From Vitrella brassicaformis CCMP3155 (lineage: Eukaryota > Protista > Chromerida), in the NCBI GenBank assembly GCA_001179505.1, contig CDMY01000293.1, positions 62,001-126,000 of the forward strand: a stretch of 64,000 bases of DNA. Reading direction: 5' to 3'. The notes below the pieces were generated by a model, which was given only the letters and a program-made list of their open reading frames with translations, ran no database searches and was not told the origin of the DNA. A program made the position numbers and the translations under genes. This document shows, one piece after another, positions 1-40,199 of this stretch (position 1 is the first letter of the stretch; every line of letters starts with the position of its first letter).

Positions 1-219
1 CGCACAAAACCTCATTCATGATCACTGTGTCCCTCTCTCTGTCTCTGTCATTGTGGTGCCGATATATGAAATGCGGGCGTGTGGACGCCCCCCGAGACAC
101 GACAGACACGGAACATGTGCACGAACGAACACAGACAGATAGCTACGTCGCCCGCTGCGGGCGAGAAAATGAGTGAGTCACCACACCCAGATGGTGGTGC
201 GACGACTGACCGCTCCGGT

Positions 220-3068
220 CTAGAGGGTGACGATATCGCCCGCCAGCCGTCTGTAGTGGTCCGCCTTCCAGTCCGCATACCTAACACACACACATCCATC
301 CATCCATGGTACAGAGGAGACATCATGTGAGTGTACAGCGTCCTGTGGATGGTCCGTCCGTCCACCCATACATACACACATACCCGGGGATGGTGTCGCA
401 TATTCTCTTCCAGTTGGGGTTGGCTGCCTTGTTCAGTCGTGGGTTGCTGGAGCCGTCCTTGTTGATCACACCGCCCACTGGCGTCCAGCCCGACCCATAG
501 GGCTCCTGGTGGTACACCTGACACAAACATTCACACATACAGAGAGAGAGAGAGAGGACGTCGACGTTTTCGTTCATTTCATGGTTGAGTGGTTGTTGTC
601 TGACCTCGGTGCCTCCGAGTACGACGGGGATGCATCCGCCCTTGACGATCATCTCCCACGCGAAGTGGATGTCGTCATAGCCCCACCAACCGTCGTACAC
701 CTCGTCGTAACCCCCTATCAACTCCCACACACGCTGTATCATACCCATGCACACACACAACAACGCAAGAGAAGACAAGACATGCAAACGACCCTCTCTC
801 TCTCCATATCTCTCCCTCCGCCCGTTGTGTACCTACCCTTGGGAAGGCCGTATGCATGCCGTAGAAGTAGGCCCACGGGTGGACCCCCTCGCGCACGTTG
901 TCGAGGACCTTGCCGTGGCTGAACCGGTTGTCGCGCGGCTTGAAGTAGTTGGCCTTGGAGAGTATCCGGGGGAACGTCCCGCACACACTGAAGTCCTTCA
1001 TCACGTGCTCGTCCGTCCAGTCCTCCGTCGCGACGAACCACCGCTCCGCCGTGACGAGATACGGCGTCGAGGGATCTCGGGAGCTGAAAGACACACACGA
1101 AACGATAAGCACAGCGATAGAGATGGATGTGTGAACGTGCGTGGGTGGGTGTGAGCGCGGGTACCTGAGGAACTGGTAGAGGTTTTCGAGGAAGTTTTCG
1201 TTGAGGATGACGTCGGAGTCCATGCCGACGATGAAGTCGTACTTGGCCTGCTTGATGCCCATGTTGCGCCCAGAGGGGACTGAAAAGGTGTTCTCCAACT
1301 TCCGACGCTGGGCGATGTGATAGATAGATGCCACACAACACACAGAGAGAACAGAGGAGAGGATCATCCATCTATCCATCCATCCATCTATCCATCCATG
1401 TCTGCCTGCCTGCAGTATCTATCATTTATTGCCGGACTGACCTGTATGAAGGTGAGGTCGAGTTTCTCTCTGTATTTCCTGTAGATGGCGTCGACGTCGT
1501 CGGTCGAGTTGTTGTCGAGGATAATGACCTCGAACTTGAAGTCGCTCTTGATCCGCTGCTTGCACAGACCCGCCAACGTCTTCTTGACGATCTCCTCCTA
1601 CCACACAAGACAACACAACACACGTCTCACTGGCTGGCTGTGCGTGCCTTGGGTGGTGGGTGGTGCTGTGGTGCGGCACTCACCTGGTTGAACATCGGGA
1701 AGACGCAGCTGAAGTTGATGCCAGTTGGGTACAGGTTGGTGGGCAGCTCCCTCGGGCGACCCGTGATCATCGCACACGCCTTGGACCACTCACCCCACCC
1801 ACTCAGACGGGGCTTGCCCTGGTCACACGACCCTCAAAACAAATGAATACATGTACGTACAAGTTCAGGGATGTCCTGCCTACCGTGACGTGTTGGTTGT
1901 AGGGTTTGTCGAAGAGCATGTGCTTCCACTCGGGAGTCATGGCGCCCTCGTCCGCCGTGGGCTTGTCGTCTATCAACACATCGCCTGCCACACATCACAG
2001 AACACACGTACAAGGTGTCGATTGACACAATTATGGATCCCTTCCTCCCTCCCACCCGGGCTCGTTGTCTCTTCTCTCTCTCCCCTCTCTCTCTCTGTCT
2101 AACCTCTGACGGTGGTCTTGTCCTTGGTGAGTATGAGTCTGTGCACCCACTCGCTGCCGAGGTGCTTCTCCACCCACTGTGTCTTCTCGGCCGAGCACGC
2201 GGCCACATTGGTGGGCAGCGGGGCGCTGACGATGAAGACGTCGAACCCCGCATCCTTCATCGCCTTGACGGCACTCACACCACCCGACATCGCAGGCATG
2301 TCGCGGAAGAACCCTGAGAGACAGACCGACAGGCAGACAGGCAGACACGTGACGTCACGTTACATTCGTTGTGGGTGGGTTGGGTTCGACGGTGTGCGTA
2401 CCGTACCGTCGGTCTTGCAGACGTCGGTGACGATTTGGCGGTGCTCTGGTGGGTAGTCGTCCTCACTGACACACACGCACACGACGCATTGATGGACGGA
2501 TTGACGACACTCAGGCAGGCAGCCATCCAGGCAGGCAGGCAAGCAGACACCATCAATCAAGACGCACGTACTCGTCTGACCTTCCTTTTATGTGCTGACG
2601 TGTATACTGACTGTTTCCAGTTTTTGCGTTGTTCAAAGGGCACAAGGGGCACGTCCGGGTGGTGTTTCTTCATCGCAGTGACGAAGCCGGCCTCCCAGTC
2701 GCACAGCGTGTTGTCCATGTCCACAAGAATCACTGCATGACACCACGCCACACCACGCTGGCTGGACACGGCAGCACAGGGTGGTATGATCTTTCCCCTA
2801 CTACCTCTGCTGTTGGCGGTGCCGGAGAACATGGGCTTGCCCTCAGCGAGCATCTCAAAGCCCTCAGGGCTGTGGCCATTGGGAGGGCCTGCACAACCCA
2901 CAACGGACATACGCACATGACACCATGATGTCTCGTGGGATCTGTCTTTCCCCCTGTTTAGGGAGCGGCCCGCCCACGTATGATATCTGGGTGCTGCCGC
3001 ATATCCGGCGCGTCGAAGTCGTGAGCGCCCTTGCCCTCAACATCATCCGAGTACGCTGGGAGAGGCAT
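220..3068 (-). CDS. Fusion protein: HAD-family 5'(3')-deoxyribonucleotidase (NT5C-like) domain + GT2/GT7C-type glycosyltransferase; ~13 exons, roughly 565 aa
   Basis: GT-AG splicing gives one frame: MPLPAYSDD...VILVDMDNTLCDWEAGF (HAD motif I DxDxT)...GFFRDMPAMSGG...EKTQWVEKHLG...GDVLIDDKP (motif IV)...FDKPYN...GKPRLSGWGEW, then FSCVFPMFNQEEIVKKTLAGLCKQ...FEVIILDNNSTD...RNMGIKQAKYDFIVGMDSDV (DxD)...IGGYDEVYDGWWGYDDIHF; stop TAG at 220-222. Confidence 0.85.
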
Positions 3069-3177
3069 TGGAAGCGAACACGACAGATCTATATGCGATG
3101 CTGGAGGGACGGCTGCCGGGCTGGTAATGGAGAGGACGGAGAGAGCTGTACAAAGAGGCGGGCAAACCGACTCAGAA

Positions 3178-3215
3178 GGTTCAGGGTAAGGGTTTCAGGT
3201 AAGGGTTTTGGGGTT
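3178..3215 (-). promoter_or_regulatory. Degenerate telomere-like (telo-box-like AAACCCT) array upstream of the nucleotidase-glycosyltransferase gene
   Basis: ggttcagggtaagggtttcaggtaagggttttggggtt lies 110-150 bp upstream of the ATG at 3068; similar arrays occur at 31121-31148 and 39161-39175. Confidence 0.35.
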
Positions 3216-3540
3216 GCCCCAACGGCTTCCGTTTTCCTCTCACACACATGCACGTATGCTGGTCATATCCTGGCCAATCCTGGTGGGATTCCATGTGGGA
3301 TTCGGTCAATGCTCATTTCCGGTTGAGCTTTTCTTCACAGGTTGGGCGGCCGGCGTCGGTTCGGCCGTCAATCTCACAGAGCGCCGGCTACAGGACGAGG
3401 GCATCGTAGAATGACGTCTCGGATCGAAGATCATCGGGAGATTCATTCATCCATCCATCCATCCATTCAGTCTGTCAATCAATGTACTGTATATACATTT
3501 TTGTTACAAGTCAAATGACTAATCGTCCTCTGACACGCTC

Positions 3541-3862
3541 TCACGAGAAACAGACTCCCTCTCATTCAAACAGACTCGAGAATGGCCAGGAAAGTATTGA
3601 ATGAGTCAATGAATGAGTGGGGGGACAAAACGATACGGATAATGACGCAGGCAGCAACTTGCAGTCACGGCAGTGTGGCTCACTGACCAATCAACCGTCC
3701 GACCGATGCAGACAAACCAAGCAACACATGCGTGCTGTGCTACCTCTCCATGAATCTCTGACAATGAATGCGATGCATGTGCTCCAACAGTGCAAGGCAC
3801 TCACACCACACGCAGAACAAATGAATGAACAGATGACATGAATCACCAAGTCTCAATCGCAC
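3541..3862 (+). repeat. Dispersed intergenic repeat family A, copy 1 (non-autonomous element-like)
   Basis: Reverse-complement match to 21513-21830 (e.g. cagtcacggcagtgtggctcactgaccaatcaaccg vs cggttgattggtcagtgagccacactgccgtgactg) and partial match to 61165-61291. Confidence 0.8.
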
Positions 3863-4830
3863 TGATCGCTGATACTCACTGATTTATGATCACCACTTGC
3901 AGCCATCCATCCATTCAATCACCCAGCCACCACCCATCGATATCACTCACTCGAGCTCACTCATGATCACTCACTCACTCATTCACTCACACAAAACGAG
4001 CAACAAGGGACAAGCAGTCATGTGTCTCACCTCTAGCTAACGGTCTTAAGTGAGGATTGTATCTGTCTACGCAGGTCCCGCGTGACGAAAATATACATGT
4101 ATGGGTTCTATATACATGAAGGTCGGAGTGGGGCGCGGGATGCAGGATTAATCAGAGCCATCATCTATGCCAACGGGACGGCACACAAGGACACCGCCAC
4201 CACGGCCAGCCCATCTTCACTATAGTACAAAGAGGCCGTCCGTGAGCTATCTGTGTGTACATGCATCAGGGCCTGACTGCACACCGCACCCCCAACCCCC
4301 CCTCTCTGTTTGTCTGTCTGCTGCCGGGGAGCCATTTGCCTGCCTGATGGATGGCCAACTGATGGCCAATGGATGGATGCTGTAGTGCGAATACCGCACA
4401 TACCGAACGAACGAGGCTGCCGCCACACGCACATCTAGAGAGAGGGTGGACTGGCTGGCTGTTGGACACCAAAAAAAACACTCGGTCTGTCTGCAGGCCG
4501 TCTGTCTGTCTGTCTTTCTGTCTGTCTGATTTTTGATTCGCCCCAATCTCGTCCCTCCCTCCCTCCCTCCCTCACTCACTCCCTCACTCACTCACTCGTG
4601 CCGTCATTCTCCCTCCCTCCCTAGTCACCCGGATCCACGTGTATGCACCATTCCCCAACCAGAGATTATATGGGCATGTATGCATACCGCTGCCACACAT
4701 CGTCACACACACACACAATTGGCCTTCTGGTCCTTAAGGACGTACTGCAAGGACGTAAGTCCAAAGGCTATGAGCAGACGACACAGGCAGCGAATCGACT
4801 GAGCAAGCCCCCAAGAAAGGCCGGGATACC

Positions 4831-7800
4831 CTATTTCTTCCAGAGGCCGAGATTGGCGCCTTTGTCGGCGATGTTCTTGATTCCGCCGGGGAGCTTTATG
4901 AGGTGCTCCCAGTTCATGAGGTCGAGGAGCCCGCCGTCACTCATGGAGCACGACCAGATATCCATCAGCTCGCCACCCTCAATCACCAAATACCTGGCCT
5001 GCACCCATTCACGCAGTAGGCAGAGAGAGAGAGAGAGGGCGGCGCGTGCGCGATCTGACACATTGATCGTTGTCGTCATGCCGCAAACCTTGTCGTAAAT
5101 TGCATACGTCACTGCCGTCGCAACTACCTCGTATTTCCCATACAGGTACCACAAGTTGTAGAGTTGGGAGCGTGCCGCCGCGTAGAAAACGAGCGTCTCA
5201 GGGATGTCATGCAGCTTGCCCACACCGTCGGCGTACAACTCGGGAGCGAGTGAAAAGGCATCTTTGAGGGTGCGGACGAACAGCCAGTCCTTGAAGTCGC
5301 GGACCTTGCAGGGATCGTTCTCGTGCGCCGAAATATACTGCACGCACCTCATCAGTCATGCATCCAGCAGCACTGTCGTCTTTGGTCACTTGACGTACCC
5401 GTTGTGCCCTGCAGCCGAGCAGCTCTATTGCGACGTTGTGGGCGAATGTATCGACCCACTCGGCGAGCTGCTTCTTGAGGCCATCCCACTTGTCAATGAG
5501 GTCCTCCAACTTCGTAGGGCCTGCCGTCTCCCCCAGGAGGAGCCGCTTGCCAGAAGAGGGCTGCAGTGCAGATGGACGACAAGGAAAAGACATGACAAAG
5601 GGATGTGGCTTTGGATGGATGCTACGTCATCCCCGTGGCTGAGTGCTGCACTGTCAGAGATAGACTGCATGCACCTGCAGATGAAACTGCACGATGGTCA
5701 AGACCTCTTCTGAGGTCAAAACGTCTTCTGTGGTCAACAGCTCGGCGCCCTCGTCGATGACGGGTGTGGTTGGGGGGCCTGTTAGCACGCGCTGTCGCTG
5801 CTGGGACTTGACGATGGCCTCGGCCTCGTGAAGGCGCTCGAGCGCCACCGCCGCGCCGCCCTGAGGTCTTGCTGGGGCGCCACGGCCGAGGGACGGGACG
5901 GCAGGTGGGCCCTGCTTCGCCTGCTCGGCCAGCATGGATACGAAGGCGCTGATGGTCCGCCGCACCAGGTCGTCGTCCTGAACGACATGAAGGCGAAATA
6001 ATATATCCTTCCTGCGTCAGCAGGCAGGCCAGCGATGGCTCGTCAACTGACCACGAGAGCTGCTGGCTTCATGACTCCACCGAGCCGCCGCCGCTGCCGG
6101 TCGGCTGCAGCGCCAAATAGGCCGTGCGCCTTGAGGATGACGTCGAAGTATGCCGTCAGCTCGCTGCGGAGGTCGGCTATCGCCTCCGCATCCAGGGTGG
6201 GGATCATGCTCATGCTCATGCGTGTGGGGTCGAGGATGGCCTTGATGACCTTGTCGACGTCGGTGTGCTGGACGGACCCCCTTTCAATCGCCTCCTTGAG
6301 CACCGTCTGTGTGTCATCGCTGCACACAGAAACACACCAAGAGAGAGCGTGAATGCATCGGCCGATGTGCTGGTCAGATAGAGATAGAGATATAGATATA
6401 GCCAGGCGTGTGTGTGGGGGTCGCTGTCGCCGTACTGACTACTGTGAACGGGTGAGCTGGTCGAATCTGTAGAGAAAGGCGCCGAGCAGCTCCCTGGTCA
6501 TCGACATGATGTAATTGGCCGGCTCCTCAGCTACACACACGCGCCCACGCACAGGGAGAGAGAAAGAGAGATGGTAGGTACCTCCAATAAGGCCCCGCGC
6601 CGCCGGCCTTTGGGTGTCGGTCTGTCTGTGTCACTCGTGTGTGTGACGATATTGTCGATGAAGGCGTCGGAGGCCTTGTCGATGTCCGTGAGATACGCAA
6701 CCAGCTGCACACCGCAGCAGACGCCTCACTGTCGGATCATCATTCTCCGTGTGTCTCCTCCGTGTGCTACCTTATTGAGGTTGCCGTAAGCGAATATGGC
6801 GACCATGTCGATATAAGCCTCGTACCGCTCCGCGTCAAACAGCTGCATCTGGCCCGTCACCTATAGAGGCAGGCACACACACGTACGAGAGAGGGATTCA
6901 TCCAAATTGGAGAGAGACTGGGGATGGGCATGGGCGAATACCTACCGTCTGTGCGACTCTCTGCAGGAAGGAGATCGCGGGTGTGAGGACATACGCCGGC
7001 AACGCCGCAAACTCCTCGAACTTCGCCAGCCATTTGGTGGTCAGCTCGGCGCTTTTGGCCACAAAGTGACCCAAAATGTCGGTGAATTCAACGAGGAAGG
7101 AGATATTGGGCGGCACAGTCGACCCGCCATAGGCCACCGCGTTGAGAAAGGGAATAGTAGGCATCGGAGTCTTCTCTGCGGTGCTGATGAGGGAGCCCGC
7201 GATCTTCTGAGGGACGGCTGGCAGCTCCTCCAATGGGTTGTAGATGGGCAGTCCCTTTGGCAAGCCTGAGGGCGGCGAGGGAATGAGCTCCACAATGCGC
7301 TTGAAGTAGACGTCCAAGTTCAGAAGGTGGGTCACGGGCAGCATTGGGGGCAGATAGGGCAGCTTGGTGAAGGCCTCAGCGAAGTGCTCGGCTATTGCAA
7401 GCCACTTCTTGGCCACTTTGGCGATGAGCTGCTCAATCTCGGTGCGCAGGGGGGGGCATGGTGACGGCCGCCGACAGCGTGACGGTGAAGGATTCGGTAA
7501 GCTCGCCCAGCAACACGTGGTAGCCATCGACCTGACAGACGTGGAGTGTCCGTTCGCAAAGCGAAACACACCAACCCATCGTCTGCCTGCATATTATCCA
7601 TATGACTTACGGCGAGAGAGGCAAGGTAGTCGTCGAAAACTTGTTGATTCTCGACCGAGCCACCCTCCTTGTGGTGTCTGTCGCCGCCCAGCCGCAGGCG
7701 CTCGAGGAAGGGCGCCAGGATGCGCTGCAGGAAGGTCATCCACTCGTCGGGCTTCAGCAGCAAAGTGCCCGGCTGCGGCAGGCCGGTCATCACGGATGGC

Positions 7801-12566: not shown

Positions 12567-12867
12567 NNNNNNNNNNNNNNNNNNNNNNNNNNNNNNNNNN
12601 NNNNNNNNNNNNNNNNNNNNNNNNNNNNNNNNNNNNNNNNNNNNNNNNNNNNNNNNNNNNNNNNNNNNNNNNNNNNNNNNNNNNNNNNNNNNNNNNNNNN
12701 NNNNNNNNNNNNNNNNNNNNNNNNNNNNNNNNNNNNNNNNNNNNNNNNNNNNNNNNNNNNNNNNNNNNNNNNNNNNNNNNNNNNNNNNNNNNNNNNNNNN
12801 NNNNNNNNNNNNNNNNNNNNNNNNNNNNNNNNNNNNNNNNNNNNNNNNNNNNNNNNNNNNNNNNNNG
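12567..12867. other. Scaffold gap (N run) flanked by poly-G tracts
   Basis: ~300 N with G homopolymers on both sides; other gaps at ~14385-14685, ~20568-20867, ~31760-32059 and ~39766-40065. Confidence 0.95.
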
Positions 12868-13830: not shown

Positions 13831-15919
13831 ATGCTGTTCTTCTTGGGAATTAGTCTGCCCTTGGTGATTTCCGCTGCTGGCAAGATCTTTATCAACCGCA
13901 CGTCCGCTGAGCACATCATCGTGCCAGGCCGTGCAGCAACAGATAGCGACGCGAGGAGGGCTGTCGTGAGCACCGTCTACGCTCAGGAGCCCGATGACGG
14001 CAATAGCAAAAAGAAGAAATACAAACCGACCCGCAAGGTCAAGTTTGTTCCCGTCGGACCCAACGCAGGTAGGCGCATACACTGCAACGTCGCAGAGGTG
14101 CACATGCATGTATGGGTTCTCCGGCCTTAGGCACCTACTGCGACCCGTATACGCGTCACTACTACCCCAATCTGTGTCCAACCCCCGAGCAACAGCAGGG
14201 CGAGATCCCAAAAGCCGAGTGGGATCCGAAGAGCTTCCCCTCCTCAGCAGGTGAGCATGGGATATCTCGGACGACTGCGCGCCTTCCTGCCGGCGTTCTG
14301 CGACATGACCAGGTCCAACAGCGTACCCCGGTGGCCCGCAGATCACTGGTCTGGAGCACCTGCGACACGGCGACATGGAGGAACNNNNNNNNNNNNNNNN
14401 NNNNNNNNNNNNNNNNNNNNNNNNNNNNNNNNNNNNNNNNNNNNNNNNNNNNNNNNNNNNNNNNNNNNNNNNNNNNNNNNNNNNNNNNNNNNNNNNNNNN
14501 NNNNNNNNNNNNNNNNNNNNNNNNNNNNNNNNNNNNNNNNNNNNNNNNNNNNNNNNNNNNNNNNNNNNNNNNNNNNNNNNNNNNNNNNNNNNNNNNNNNN
14601 NNNNNNNNNNNNNNNNNNNNNNNNNNNNNNNNNNNNNNNNNNNNNNNNNNNNNNNNNNNNNNNNNNNNNNNNNNNNNNNNNNNNGGGGAAGGGGGGTAGC
14701 AAGAGCTTTCTCCAAACGGCGGTCGGGAGGACCGGGAGATACCTTCGTAGACGAGAACAAACATCAGCTACGGCAAGTGAGAAACAGAGCACAGGACCAG
14801 ATAGCAACACATGGATGCAATTGAGTGCGTCGTTTGTCTGTCAGGCGTATTGGCTCCTTCATTCATGCAGATGGACATGTATCACCATCAGTACCAGTAC
14901 CCTGGACAGGTGTGCTCATGAGTCGATAAGATACCCGATGGGCCGTAGGAGGCCTGCACGTTTGGCCTTGCTTGTTGCAGGTTGGGCCCAGCCAGCTGAC
15001 GAAGCAGAAGCCCACTCAGTTTCCCAACCAGTTGCCGGAGCCCAAGGGGGGAGGGGGTTTCCCCGCTGCGTACGGCTATTTCTGGCCGTCCGGATCGCCT
15101 TACGGCGCATACAGCCAATCTGGATATGACCCCAAGACTGGGATCCCATACGGTACGCACCGATGAATGTGTGCACGTCAGCCACTTGACCCATCCGGCG
15201 TCTGCATGCAGATTTGGGCTATGCGTATCAGTATGCCGTGCTCAAGCCCGGCGATCGTCCGGACTTGACTGGCATTCACCCAGGGGAGGAGGGTACCAAG
15301 ACCACCAAATCTAGAGCTGGTCGCTTCGCTGCTGCCGCGGCCAAGTGGACGGGGGGAGGAGACGGGGTGGGATGAAAGAAAGATGCACACAACCACTACC
15401 TATAGGATGATGAGAAGACAGATGCACACAACCACTACCTATGGGCATCAGCATACTTCCTTCTCTTGTTTCGTTCTGTTTTGCCTGCAGCTGATGGGCG
15501 GGCTGACCAAGGGTCTCGGAAAGATAGCAGGCGGGCGGATGCAGGGCGTGGTGCAGTCACTGGCCAGCGACTTCGCCGGCGACCTCCTCTCACAGGCAGG
15601 GGTCGACCAGTTCGGCAGCCTGCTCGGCGGCATGACCGACTCCTTCATGGGCCACTTAGAGGCGGTCGTCAGCCCCGATGGCCTCGCCGGCCACGCGAGC
15701 GAGCAGATCAAGAGCACCATGATCGGACTTGCGGAGGCGGACATGGCCAAAGACAATGCCTTCCCTGCCTTCCAGGACACGCTGTCGAGTGTCCTCGTGG
15801 GCTTCGGGAGGAGCTTGGCCCAGAATTATTTCGGTGAAGAGGGAGGGAACATGGCAACAATACTCACAGAGAAGGTTCCGCAACTGCTGCGGTCAGTCCT
15901 CAAAGACACAAAGGCCTAG
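13831..15919 (+). CDS. Secreted Gly-rich / Tyr-Pro-rich protein, paralog A (interrupted by a gap)
   Basis: MLFFLGISLPLVISAAGK signal peptide; spliced exons GTYCDPYTRHYYPNLCP..., GPTAYPGGPQITGLEHLRHGDMEE, GFPAAYGYFWPSGSPYGAYSQSGYDPKTGIPY and a last exon LMGGLTKGLGKIAGG...VLKDTKA*. Confidence 0.75.
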
Positions 15920-19264: not shown

Positions 19265-21113
19265 ATGCTGTTCTTCTTGGGAATTAGTCTGCCCTTGGTG
19301 ATTTCCGCTGCTGGCAAGATCTTTATCAACCGCACGTCCGCTGAGCACATCATCGTGCCAGGCCGTGCAGCAACAGATAGCGACGCGAGGAGGGCTGTCG
19401 TGAGCACCGTCTACGCTCAGGAGCCCGATGACGGCAATAGCAAAAAGAAGAAATACAAACCGACCCGCAAGGTCAAGTTCGTTCCCGTCGGACCCAACGC
19501 AGGTAGGCACATACACTGCAACGTCGCAGAGGTGCACATGCATGTATGGGTTCTCCGGCCTTAGGCACCTACTGCGACCCGTATACGCGTCACTACTACC
19601 CCAATCTGTGTCCAACCCCCGAGCAACAGCAGGGCGAGATCCCAAAAGCCGAGTGGGATCCGAAGAGCTTCCCCTCCTCAGCAGGTGAGCATGGGATATC
19701 TCGGACGACTGCGCGCCTTCCTGCCGGCGTTCTGCGACATGACCAGGTCCAACAGCGTACCCCGGTGGCCCGCAGATCACTGGTCTGGAGCACCTGCGAC
19801 ACGGCGACATGGAGGAACACATGAGATCCATCAAAACGAAGTGGCTGGGGCCCGGCCTGGGGCAAATCTTCATGAGCAATCTGGTCGAGTCCTCGATGGA
19901 CCTGCTGAACCCCAAAGGCGCCGGCGGCCTGCTTTCCTCGGTAACAAGCGGTCTGGTGGGTGCCGTTGCTAAGGGTGTGGGGCTGGAAAGCGGCAAGATG
20001 GTTGATGCATTCGTGGACAACGCGGGTTCGTTCGGTGGTTTCGTGTTCAATCAGCTGCTGTCGTCTCTGGACCCTGACAACTTGCTCCCAGCCATCGGAG
20101 GCGGCAACATCCGTGACCGACTCGGCTCCCTCTTCGACAGCTTTTTCGGGCCACTGGACAGCGAGGGCAACTATGACTCGCTGAGAGAGAGGGGCGTGCA
20201 GGTCATGATGGCACTCATGCAAAAGGGCGCCCAGGCGGGCGTTAAAGCGCTCAATGACCGCGAGGGCCTCACCAAGAGCATCAAGGGCGTGGCCGGACCG
20301 ATGCTCCTCAAGCTGGCCAAGTCCGCTCTCAGCGGCAAGGGGAAGGGGGGTAGCAAGAGCTTTCTCCAAACGGCGGTCGGGAGGACCGGGAGATACCTTC
20401 GTAGACGAGAACAAACATCAGCTACGGCAAGTGAGAAACAGAGCACAGGACCAGATAGCAACACATGGATGCAATTGAGTGCGTCGTTTGTCTGTCAGGC
20501 GTATTGGCTCCTTCATTCATGCAGATGGACATGTATCACCATCAGTACCAGTACCCTGGACAGGTGTNNNNNNNNNNNNNNNNNNNNNNNNNNNNNNNNN
20601 NNNNNNNNNNNNNNNNNNNNNNNNNNNNNNNNNNNNNNNNNNNNNNNNNNNNNNNNNNNNNNNNNNNNNNNNNNNNNNNNNNNNNNNNNNNNNNNNNNNN
20701 NNNNNNNNNNNNNNNNNNNNNNNNNNNNNNNNNNNNNNNNNNNNNNNNNNNNNNNNNNNNNNNNNNNNNNNNNNNNNNNNNNNNNNNNNNNNNNNNNNNN
20801 NNNNNNNNNNNNNNNNNNNNNNNNNNNNNNNNNNNNNNNNNNNNNNNNNNNNNNNNNNNNNNNNNNNCCCGATGGCCTCGCCGGCCACGCGAGCGAGCAG
20901 ATCAAGAGCACCATGATCGGACTTGCGGAGGCGGACATGGCCAAAGACAATGCCTTCCCTGCCTTCCAGGACACGCTGTCGAGTGTCCTCGTGGGCTTCG
21001 GGAGGAGCTTGGCCCAGAATCATTTCGGTGAAGAGGGAGGGAACATGGCAACAATACTCACAGAGAAGGTTCCGCAACTGCTGCGGTCAGTCCTCAAAGA
21101 CACAAAGGCCTAG
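19265..21113 (+). CDS. Secreted Gly-rich protein, paralog B (near-identical tandem copy of 13831-15919; interrupted by a gap)
   Basis: 19136-21343 matches 13700-16143 apart from a few substitutions (gtcaagttc/gtcaagttt, aggcacatac/aggcgcatac, aatcatttc/aattatttc). It supplies the exon MEEHMRSIKTKWLGPGLGQIFMSNLVESSMDLL... that lies in the gap of copy A. Confidence 0.75.
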
Positions 21114-31320: not shown

Positions 31321-32560
31321 ATGCCTGACGCGGTGAGTGGTCACACACGGGGCCAGTGAACACGTATACACGATGCACACGGACAGCGTTCCATCTTCCT
31401 GTGCTGGATTGCCTTGCCCTTGGTTTTCCGTCGATGCAGGTATGTGCCGCAAGTCTGTGGTGCCGTCGTAGAGCTCACTCGCTGGAAAATCAACTGAGGT
31501 AAGAAGCAGCCACCTCACGACACACGCACATATCCAATACCCCCCATGTGTGTCACCTGTATACCTCTGACAGAGTGTTTCTCGCCGACGAAGACGAGTG
31601 CGTCCACCGCGGCCACACGGCGTTAGCACCATCGAACACTCCATTGACCCAGGTAGACGACGAGGCAGACCGGGGCAAACACACCTACATATCAGAGGTT
31701 GATTGGGTGGATGGAGTGGATGGAGTGGATGGAGTGGATGGATGGATGGATGGTTGGGTNNNNNNNNNNNNNNNNNNNNNNNNNNNNNNNNNNNNNNNNN
31801 NNNNNNNNNNNNNNNNNNNNNNNNNNNNNNNNNNNNNNNNNNNNNNNNNNNNNNNNNNNNNNNNNNNNNNNNNNNNNNNNNNNNNNNNNNNNNNNNNNNN
31901 NNNNNNNNNNNNNNNNNNNNNNNNNNNNNNNNNNNNNNNNNNNNNNNNNNNNNNNNNNNNNNNNNNNNNNNNNNNNNNNNNNNNNNNNNNNNNNNNNNNN
32001 NNNNNNNNNNNNNNNNNNNNNNNNNNNNNNNNNNNNNNNNNNNNNNNNNNNNNNNNNNNGGCGGGTGGGTGGGTGGGCGGGCGTGAGGGGAGGAGAGCGG
32101 AAGGCAGGGGAGGCATGACTTATGTGATTTGCCCAGGAACTCAGACTCACTGCGAACAGGTAGTGAGTCGCTCTTTTTTCAGCCAACCCCCACCTCTCAC
32201 TGTCTGTTTCTTGAACGGGCGGTAGCGCGAGCAGCCCCTCTCTTGTCCCCTCTTGTTCGCCGCTACCGTGCTACGCCATTGTTTGTACTCGACAGTCACA
32301 GAGCCACTCAGACAGGACAGAGAGGAGCCTTTCGTACATGTGTGTGTGTATGTCAGGTCAACGGCTGGTTCCGCTCTGGCAGCGACCTCTGGATGGACGG
32401 ATACCGGCAGCGCGCCAGTCAGCCGTACCAGATACAGCTACTGCCCACCATTGTCCGCTGTCGAGCCGTCTACTACATCCCGGGGCCGTACACGATGCTC
32501 CAATATTGCGACGCTCAGTGGCATCCATTTAACCGATTCATTGCCTGTCGTCTCGTCTGA
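31321..32560 (+). CDS. Hypothetical multi-exon protein (gap-interrupted); last exon weakly BAH-like
   Basis: Spliced MPDAVCAASLWCRRRAHSLENQLRVFLADEDECVHRGHTALAPSNTPLTQ, then the gap, then VNGWFRSGSDLWMDGYRQ...QIQLLPTIVRCRAVYY...RFIACRLV*. Confidence 0.4.
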
Positions 32561-39674: not shown

Positions 39675-40199
39675 GTCTTCCTTCATGCCTTCTCTCGCTC
39701 TGGGTGTGTGTGCAGTTTTCTCTTCTACGCGTTTTTTGGCCAAGCGCCGGAGACCATATCGGTGCNNNNNNNNNNNNNNNNNNNNNNNNNNNNNNNNNNN
39801 NNNNNNNNNNNNNNNNNNNNNNNNNNNNNNNNNNNNNNNNNNNNNNNNNNNNNNNNNNNNNNNNNNNNNNNNNNNNNNNNNNNNNNNNNNNNNNNNNNNN
39901 NNNNNNNNNNNNNNNNNNNNNNNNNNNNNNNNNNNNNNNNNNNNNNNNNNNNNNNNNNNNNNNNNNNNNNNNNNNNNNNNNNNNNNNNNNNNNNNNNNNN
40001 NNNNNNNNNNNNNNNNNNNNNNNNNNNNNNNNNNNNNNNNNNNNNNNNNNNNNNNNNNNNNNNNNGGGGGGGGGGGGGGGGGAGGGTGGATGCTGTGTAC
40101 AGAGAGGTTGACTTTTCTAGTCACTACAACTGATTCCGTTAAGACTGCCTAACGACACGCATCGCCATTCGTCACCTCCGCTAGATGGCACCTTCCATC

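Follow-up and report, generated by a model that had tools for sequence, protein, structure and literature searches.

It was found that the window analysed here, a stretch of 64,000 nucleotides from the chromerid Vitrella brassicaformis CCMP3155 (contig CDMY01000293.1, positions 62,001 to 126,000), carries on its minus strand, at 220–3068, a gene in which an NT5C-type HAD nucleotidase (5'(3')-deoxyribonucleotidase) is joined in frame to a glycosyltransferase (GT) of family GT2. The gene adds a new member to a fusion family that is so far uncharacterised, and the family is best described as a variant of the known two-step theme of a GT and a HAD phosphatase. In the reading that we favour, with a probability of roughly 0.55, the protein would be a soluble bifunctional NT5C and GT2 enzyme, whose two activities would serve one pathway and yield a small-molecule β-glycoside from a UDP-sugar. 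We infer the coupling of the activities, the donor, the acceptor and the product alike from the evidence set out below.

Gene model and domain composition

Independent hand splicing of 220–3068 gave 13 exons separated by 12 GT-AG introns of 65–146 nt (Table 1). The spliced open reading frame (ORF) was 1671 nt long, comprising 556 codons and a stop, with the ATG at 3068 and the stop at 222–220 of the minus strand. It placed the nucleotidase (residues ∼59–238) in frame with the GT2/GT-A glycosyltransferase (residues ∼256–556). The initial annotation of this DNA had described an in-frame fusion of a HAD nucleotidase and a GT with no intervening stop, and all the motifs on which it relied were recovered: DMDNTL at residue 63, LIDDK at 192, VFPMFNQ at 261, ILDNNSTDD at 293, GMDSDV at 347, GGYDE at 456 and GWWGYDD at 464.

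Pfam searches supported both domains. NT5C (PF06941) was matched by exon 5 alone (27.5 bits, E = 3e-6; cut-off 24.8), and Glycos_transf_2 (PF00535) by exon 8 (28.6 bits, E = 1.6e-6) and exon 9 (28.1 bits, E = 2.3e-6) with a cut-off of 23.3 bits. Both domains thus passed the curated gathering scores although the query exons are short pieces. Together with the spliced contigs described below, these results bore out the fusion. It had also been claimed that a linker exon encodes both the end of the nucleotidase and the first strand of the GT; this was found to be so, but the coordinates given for it (∼1684–1821) were wrong and should read 1818–1684.

Neither a hydrophobic segment nor a signal peptide or membrane segment was detected in the spliced protein, the maximum Kyte-Doolittle 19-residue score being 1.29, and the N-terminus was acidic. 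The protein is probably soluble and cytosolic, judging by this composition.

Transcription as a single mRNA

The 220–3068 stretch was contained in 8 public sequencing runs, and contigs of 4 of these, from 3 studies, were mapped to window positions 1–5000. The RNA origin of the 4 mapped runs is a presumption; the spliced form of their contigs is cDNA-like. Half of the 8 runs carried ∼0.43 of the sampled words of the stretch, which is the value expected from the exons alone, and other runs carried 0.99 of the words, corresponding to the unspliced DNA form. In each of the 4 runs, one contig displayed 11 of the 12 predicted joints, with CT..AC ends on the plus strand. The twelfth joint (1984/2104) was deduced from the adjoining record coordinates 683/684. 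The contigs began at 3185/3183, i.e. 117 nt 5' of the ATG, and one of them spanned every exon to position 1 and further.

Since 13 exons stay in one frame with canonical splice sites and the cDNA-like contigs agree with them, chance was excluded. The contigs of the four runs joined the exons as modelled, with exact removal of 12 canonical introns; separate HAD and GT transcripts, the finding named beforehand as fatal to the fusion, were thereby contradicted, and the fusion stands. It is expressed as a single mRNA.

The spliced contigs passed the stop codon and position 1 and continued for 554–2352 nt more (record lengths 2398–4359), so either the 3' untranslated region (UTR) is very long or the transcript overlaps one from a neighbouring gene. 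Two further joints seen in all four runs, 383→2327 (with 37 foreign letters) and 2550→287, were taken as assembly chimeras on account of their short sides, the foreign letters and CCATCC-type repeats. Simple repeats of the CCATCC/CACACA type in the introns drew many loose contig ends, at 287–307, 383, 527–568, 1361–1415, 2065–2102, 2319–2346 and 2541–2550. In runs X7 and X8, low-depth separate contigs were present 5' of the gene (3563–3915, 4170–4484 and 4630–5000); they were not joined to the fusion transcript and are other transcribed or DNA-derived pieces. Elsewhere in the window there were five assembly gaps, each of exactly 300 N (12567–12866, 14385–14684, 20568–20867, 31760–32059 and 39766–40065).

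Table 1. Exons and untranslated regions of the NT5C-GT2 fusion gene, in window coordinates
Feature	Position	Strand	Basis
5' UTR	3069..3185	-	extent set by start of spliced contigs; no upstream ATG in 117 nt
Exon 1: start codon, acidic N-terminal extension, residues 1-31	2978..3068	-	splicing; contig joint 2888/2978
Exon 2: N-terminal extension with conserved EMLAEGK, residues 31-59	2805..2888	-	splicing, contigs, alignment
Exon 3: HAD motif I (D63-M-D65-N-T) and start of NT5C cap, residues 59-99	2612..2732	-	splicing, contigs, alignment
Exon 4: NT5C cap helices, residues 99-119	2407..2465	-	splicing, contigs
Exon 5: NT5C core, motif II (VSAP, S148), motif III (LTKDK, K184)	2104..2313	-	Pfam, human cdN match
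Exon 6: HAD motif IV (LIDDK, D194/D195)	1884..1984	-	joint to exon 5 implied by contiguous record coordinates
Exon 7 (linker exon, residues 223-267): last NT5C helix (RLSGWGEW), linker, first GT strand, FNQ	1684..1818	-	joints 1597/1684 and 1818/1884; secondary structure of a relative's model
Exon 8: GT nucleotide-binding region, DNNSTDD (D295)	1442..1597	-	Pfam Glycos_transf_2
Exon 9: GT DxD motif (D349-S-D351)	1165..1307	-	Pfam Glycos_transf_2, alignment
Exon 10: family-specific GT middle region (ANYFKPRDNRFSHG)	837..1083	-	splicing, relatives' alignment
Exon 11: GGYDE...GWWGYDD, Glyco_transf_7C-like motif, putative catalytic base D469/D470	605..733	-	splicing, alignment
Exon 12: YHQEP (H495, common to K4CP) and NPNW..IC..IPG family signature	384..517	-	splicing, alignment
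Exon 13: C-terminal helix (WK..HY..LAGDIVTL) and stop 222-220	220..280	-	splicing, contigs, alignment
3' UTR	1..219	-	contigs run on past left end of window

The nucleotidase half

Exon 5 matched the human cytosolic deoxyribonucleotidase (cdN) with E = 4e-11, and the NT5C domain of the relative P0002 matched human cdN/mdN with E = 6e-33 and an identity of about 36–38%. In full-length relatives, the NT5C Pfam score rose to 58–76 bits. An AlphaFold model of the relative P0041 (pLDDT 89.5, pTM 0.78) was compared with solved structures, and its NT5C domain matched 4yih (Z 26.7) and 4mwo (Z 26.6) with a root-mean-square deviation of 1.4 Å over 182 residues.

Alignment showed that HAD motifs I (D63-M-D65-N-T), II (S148), III (K184) and IV (D194-D195) were invariant across the fused clade and the stand-alone NT5Cs. 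Aromatic residues were retained where cdN has F18 and F44 (W71 and W97 in the window protein), and a small residue (C/N/S/A) was found in the fused clade at the position of cdN Y65 / mdN W96. We take F18 and F44 to be base-stacking residues, and likewise assume the roles of Y65 in cdN and W96 in mdN. A one-residue insertion followed motif II in the fused domain. The window protein shares with the human and mouse enzymes (NT5C, NT5M; PDB 2i7d, 4yih, 1mh9, 1z4i) the PF06941 domain, the HAD core with a four-helix cap and the same kinds of motifs I–IV; unlike them, it carries a fused GT and an N-terminal extension of ∼55 residues, and the fused domains form a clade of their own. The nucleotidase half is an NT5C-type HAD phosphatase with intact catalytic motifs and is predicted to be active.

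The glycosyltransferase half

The motifs DNNSTDD (D295), D349-S-D351, GWWGYDD (D469/D470) and YHQEP (H495) were invariant in alignments of the GT family. Glycos_transf_2 scored 74 bits in relatives; PF02709 passed its cut-off in stand-alone relatives but was weak or fell short of it in the fusions. No curated NCBIfam model came near its cut-off for this GT subfamily, the weak matches being exopolysaccharide GTs.

The family profile matched the A1 domain of the Escherichia coli K4 chondroitin polymerase (K4CP) with E = 8.5e-53 over 248 of 291 positions, and other solved GT2s with 1e-16 or worse. Structure comparison of the P0041 model agreed with this: its GT domain matched K4CP with Z 30.3, followed by AvpGT as second-best structural match (Z 20.8 over 253 residues), while TarS, SpsA and ppGalNAcTs lay within Z 18–21 and generic GT2 enzymes at 18–19. 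K4CP A1 (a β1,4-GalNAc-transferase of GT2; PDB 2z86/2z87) has in common with the window protein the DxD motif, a WG.(E/D)D segment and an exactly matching YHQEP, at 26–28% identity. K4CP is a polysaccharide polymerase with two GT domains, whereas the window protein has a single GT and the C-terminal signature NPNW..IC..IPG..WK..Y..L..DI. On these motifs and profiles, the transferase half is classed as a metal-dependent, inverting GT-A/GT2 enzyme with intact catalytic motifs, predicted to be active, and its specific solved relative as the β-GalNAc-transferase domain of K4CP.

AvpGT, NucGT and ScaGT (PDB 9jma, 9jn3) are soluble GT2 enzymes that glycosylate nucleosides (PMC11959488). They are inverting 3'-O-β-glycosyltransferases of ∼300 aa that use UDP-Glc or UDP-Gal, and NucGT/AvpGT 3'-O-glucosylate tubercidin and nucleocidin (PMC11959488). 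The fold match covered the whole GT domain; the identity is low, and PMC11959488 makes no mention of a nucleotidase, whether fused or encoded nearby.

A rare fusion family in marine protists

Of 1.84 billion cluster representatives, no more than 33 proteins were matched by the GT piece, so the subfamily is rare. Full-length fusions ranked among the best of these matches, and a further search started from one of them, P0002, brought up many more. Full-length NT5C-GT2 fusions were found in Chloropicon primus (QDZ20028.1), C. roscoffensis (WZN58809.1), C. mariensis and C. laureae, and on many marine metagenome and metatranscriptome contigs. Over its full length the window protein was 61–66% identical to these relatives, and it had no identical database entry. 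The search for the co-architecture that had been called for thus yielded the fusion in other marine protists and neighbouring genes in bacteria, with no match to the GT domain in the phage records searched. The gene is not a one-off, and a conserved family is already deposited under automatic names; GenBank and UniProt list the Chloropicon relatives as "putative 5'(3')-deoxyribonucleotidase" or "Glycosyltransferase 2-like domain-containing protein". The initial annotation knew of no characterised protein with this architecture, in agreement with our literature searches, in which no relevant paper on an NT5C-GT2 fusion, a characterised member or a galactofuranosyl solute was found. Nor did the ESM Atlas hold a large cluster with the NT5C-GT2 architecture; it gave generic GT2 leads only, with scores <0.9. 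The C. primus fusion gene is a single uninterrupted ORF, in contrast to the 12 introns of the window gene, which argues against contamination.

Phylogenies of each half had also been proposed beforehand. The fused GTs formed one clade (support 99), sister to P0006 and the NT5C-linked pair P0003/P0083 (99). The GT2-fused NT5C domains likewise formed one clade (support 100), apart from the GT4-fused clades and the stand-alone archaeal, candidate phyla radiation (CPR) and animal enzymes.

Two further kinds of fusion were observed. In a sister clade (P0039, P0163 and P0168; 880–1029 aa), an N-terminal UDP-galactopyranose mutase (UGM) precedes NT5C and GT2, and its UGM part matched Trypanosoma cruzi UGM with E = 1e-157. 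The likeness to eukaryotic UGM (PDB 4dsg, 3ute) extends over a full UGM domain fused upstream of NT5C-GT2, whereas the window gene, whose contigs start 117 nt 5' of its ATG, is without it. The triple fusion sits on a eukaryotic genomic metagenome contig (L091, 9531–12715). On that contig, the first 157 aa of the mutase are called as an ORF of their own that shares 4 nt with the 904-aa ORF, which points to either a frameshift or a small intron, and a divergent MFS sugar-transporter gene lies ∼1.2 kb upstream of the triple fusion. In a second fusion family (for example L092, 8595–10451), NT5C follows a GT4 (GT-B) enzyme at its C-terminal end; this family was found in dinoflagellates, namely Polarella glacialis (P0218, CAE8700476.1), in MMETSP transcripts and on picoeukaryote contigs.

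Bacterial relatives and their neighbourhoods

Stand-alone bacterial relatives of 280–320 aa correspond to the GT domain over its whole length, and the C-terminal NPNW..IC..IPG..WK..Y..L..DI is present in them too. In both of the two closest relatives with genomic context, an NT5C gene lies downstream: it overlaps the GT gene by 8 nt in P0083, and in P0003 it lies beyond an inserted insertion sequence (IS) transposase. In the more distant P0087, the downstream gene overlaps the GT gene and matches NT5C weakly, and a Nostocaceae relative (L010) has a HAD-IIA phosphatase 10 nt upstream. Reference prokaryote genomes contained two relatives only, at 36–37% identity (L010 and L011); for operons of the closer GT-NT5C type, metagenome contigs are the only known source.

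Several of these neighbourhoods had features of their own. On L008 (1183–2352), an IS (DDE_Tnp_1) transposase stands between the GT and its NT5C neighbour, a 132-aa ORF that lacks the N-terminal motif I region. On L009 (3831–7028), the GT relative and the NT5C-like gene that overlaps it share one operon-like run with a fatty-acid desaturase and a weak TLC-domain protein, a hint that the acceptor in this lineage could be lipid-linked. On L010 (3421–6846), from a Nostocaceae metagenome-assembled genome, a shikimate-dehydrogenase-like gene, an O-methyltransferase, the HAD-IIA phosphatase and the GT relative point in the same direction, and the run looks like a small-molecule pathway. The contexts of L002, L003, L005, L007 and L011 were heterogeneous and were set aside for functional inference. 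In L002 (1957–13621), the GT relative is surrounded by ATP-grasp, condensation-domain, second GT-like and two dCTP-deaminase-like genes, a phosphodiesterase, AAA ATPases and a DCD+PPDK_N+PEP-utilizer protein, a set that could be a nucleotide-related natural-product or conflict island.

Proposed function

Joined or neighbouring genes are among the strongest signs of a common pathway that sequence can offer. Here the linkage of phosphatase and transferase recurs as bacterial operon neighbours, as fusions to two unrelated GT folds and as replacement by a non-orthologous HAD enzyme, which argues that the two act in one pathway on a soluble substrate. Two routes may be considered. In route (a), the nucleotidase would free a nucleoside from its monophosphate and the GT would then glycosylate the nucleoside. 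In route (b), the GT would glycosylate a phosphorylated acceptor and the phosphatase would then strip the phosphate, as in the trehalose-, sucrose- and glucosylglycerol-phosphate routes.

In the TPS-TPP, SPS-SPP, GgpS-GgpP and MpgS-MpgP pairs, a UDP/GDP-sugar GT is joined to or stands beside a HAD phosphatase, and a soluble glycoside is made in two steps. The resemblance lies in the arrangement, a GT and a HAD phosphatase in one polypeptide in eukaryotes or in adjacent genes in bacteria. The components differ: those pairs combine GT20, GT4 or GT55 enzymes with TPP- or S6PP-type HAD phosphatases, whereas a K4CP-like GT2 and an NT5C-type HAD are combined here, with the phosphatase preceding the GT, in contrast to the known pairs. 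In the window exons and the relatives, Pfam detected PF00535 and PF06941 only, and no combination of GT20, GT4 or GT55 with a TPP/S6PP-type phosphatase. The two-step logic put forward in the initial annotation gained independent support from the bacterial neighbourhoods and further fusions, but membership in the GT20/GT4/GT55-type pairs did not hold.

The donor is probably galacto-configured, as suggested by the kinship with the K4CP GalNAc-transferase, the 7C-type motif and the UGM fusion in the sister clade, where UGM would supply UDP-galactofuranose. An inverting enzyme with UDP-α-D-galactofuranose would yield β-galactofuranosides, the form usual in nature. The best reading of the acceptor is a nucleoside or another phosphorylated small molecule, and the product might be a galacto-configured β-glycoside. 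It may be a new compatible solute or a glycosylated nucleoside, as originally suggested.

Several observations weigh against the proposed bifunctional enzyme or narrow it. More distant bacterial relatives, at 31–35% identity, had mixed contexts and no phosphatase nearby; because of them, the GT-phosphatase pairing is a feature of a subclade and not of the whole GT family. The bacterial neighbour NT5C of L008 fell on a long branch outside the fused NT5C clade, and since it fails to join that clade, a common origin of the pair, or its transfer as a whole operon, is not supported. No match to UGM was obtained by tblastn in the 64-kb window, so galactofuranose may not apply here. The profile match to AvpGT (E = 1.9e-9) was confined to positions 2–140, the N-terminal half, with an identity of 17–18%, which marks AvpGT as a distant relative; membership of the window protein in the NucGT/AvpGT/ScaGT group is not supported on these grounds. 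Furthermore, the structure comparison and several database searches used the ∼65%-identical relatives P0002 or P0041, or single exons, in place of the whole window protein.

The domains might instead have been joined merely for co-expression, with NT5C keeping house in the deoxyribonucleoside and ribonucleoside monophosphate (dNMP/NMP) pool and the GT acting independently on a polysaccharide, glycolipid or protein. The close match of the NT5C half to the structure of the housekeeping cdN/mdN enzymes would suit such an arrangement, as would the nearest solved GT relative, a polysaccharide polymerase domain, and the weak NCBIfam matches to exopolysaccharide GTs. However, NT5C or another HAD enzyme is independently paired with the GT clade among bacterial operon neighbours, and NT5C is fused to the unrelated GT4 fold as well; it is difficult to see why both fused domains should be monophyletic if they were not functionally coupled, and a protein with neither membrane anchor nor secretory signal is ill-suited to polymer export. 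We consider this explanation unlikely, though it is the strongest of the alternatives.

Somewhat less probable is the detoxification of nucleoside analogues, a special case of route (a), in which the nucleotidase would remove the activating 5'-phosphate of a toxic or signalling nucleotide and the GT would cap a sugar hydroxyl of the nucleoside. Human cdN and mdN do dephosphorylate nucleoside-analogue monophosphates. NucGT/AvpGT offer a precedent for the second step (PMC11959488), and AvpGT is the second-best fold match. A MatE efflux gene directly upstream of the bacterial GT-NT5C pair of P0083 would also fit. Against it, the argument proceeds by analogy alone, AvpGT is distant, no toxin-producing context is known in the algae, and the UGM fusion better fits the biosynthesis of a defined product.

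The nucleotidase might also clear a by-product, hydrolysing UMP derived from UDP breakdown and so lifting product inhibition from the GT, and from UGM in proteins that have it. Enzymes of the cdN type accept UMP and dUMP, UDP inhibits many GTs, and NT5C is fused to three kinds of UDP-sugar enzyme (GT2, GT4 and UGM), all of which would be in keeping with this role. Nevertheless, GT-A enzymes release UDP instead of UMP, and a diphosphatase is lacking; in the cytosol UMP is easily recycled, so that a dedicated hydrolysis would waste nucleotide; and the non-orthologous HAD-IIA phosphatase beside a bacterial relative suggests a role on the acceptor side. By-product clearance therefore appears improbable.

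Modification of DNA bases or their precursors, like base J or the glycosylation of 5-hydroxymethylcytosine and 5-hydroxymethyluracil in phages, as the initial annotation had envisaged for base J and 5-hydroxymethyluracil, is the least credible: a nucleotidase type that prefers dUMP/dTMP in animals is indeed paired with a GT-A enzyme, and phage GT2 clusters were among the nearest in the Atlas feature search (scores <0.9, leads only), but the GT domain had no tblastn match in 50,697 phage records, a scan of viral contigs gave one weak 25% match, PADLOC found no defence-system match, Pfam found no DNA-binding, JBP or hydroxylase domain (no direct comparison with a JGT sequence was made), and the family occurs in Chloropicon green algae. 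A phage or virus origin was likewise rejected, given the lack of phage matches and the single weak viral contig.

Implications

An NT5C-type phosphatase is tied to sugar transfer by three independent lines, namely the bacterial operon, the fusion to two unrelated GT folds and the further fusion to UGM. Tentatively, the NT5C-GT2 family, extended by UGM in the sister clade, and the parallel GT4-NT5C family might make an undescribed class of cytosolic metabolite in marine protists, such as a β-galactosyl or β-galactofuranosyl nucleoside or the glycoside of another phospho-acceptor, in the role of a solute, a storage compound or the inactivated form of a nucleoside, by a pathway spread among bacteria, green algae and alveolates; this wider proposal is possible but rather doubtful. 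Such proteins are at present annotated only as "deoxyribonucleotidase" or "cell wall glycosyltransferase", and the identity of the product would correct these names. Identification of the product would also make the fusion available as a soluble single-polypeptide biocatalyst for the glycosylation of nucleosides or the synthesis of glycosides, and it could bring to light a metabolite new to algae, perhaps with galactofuranose in it.

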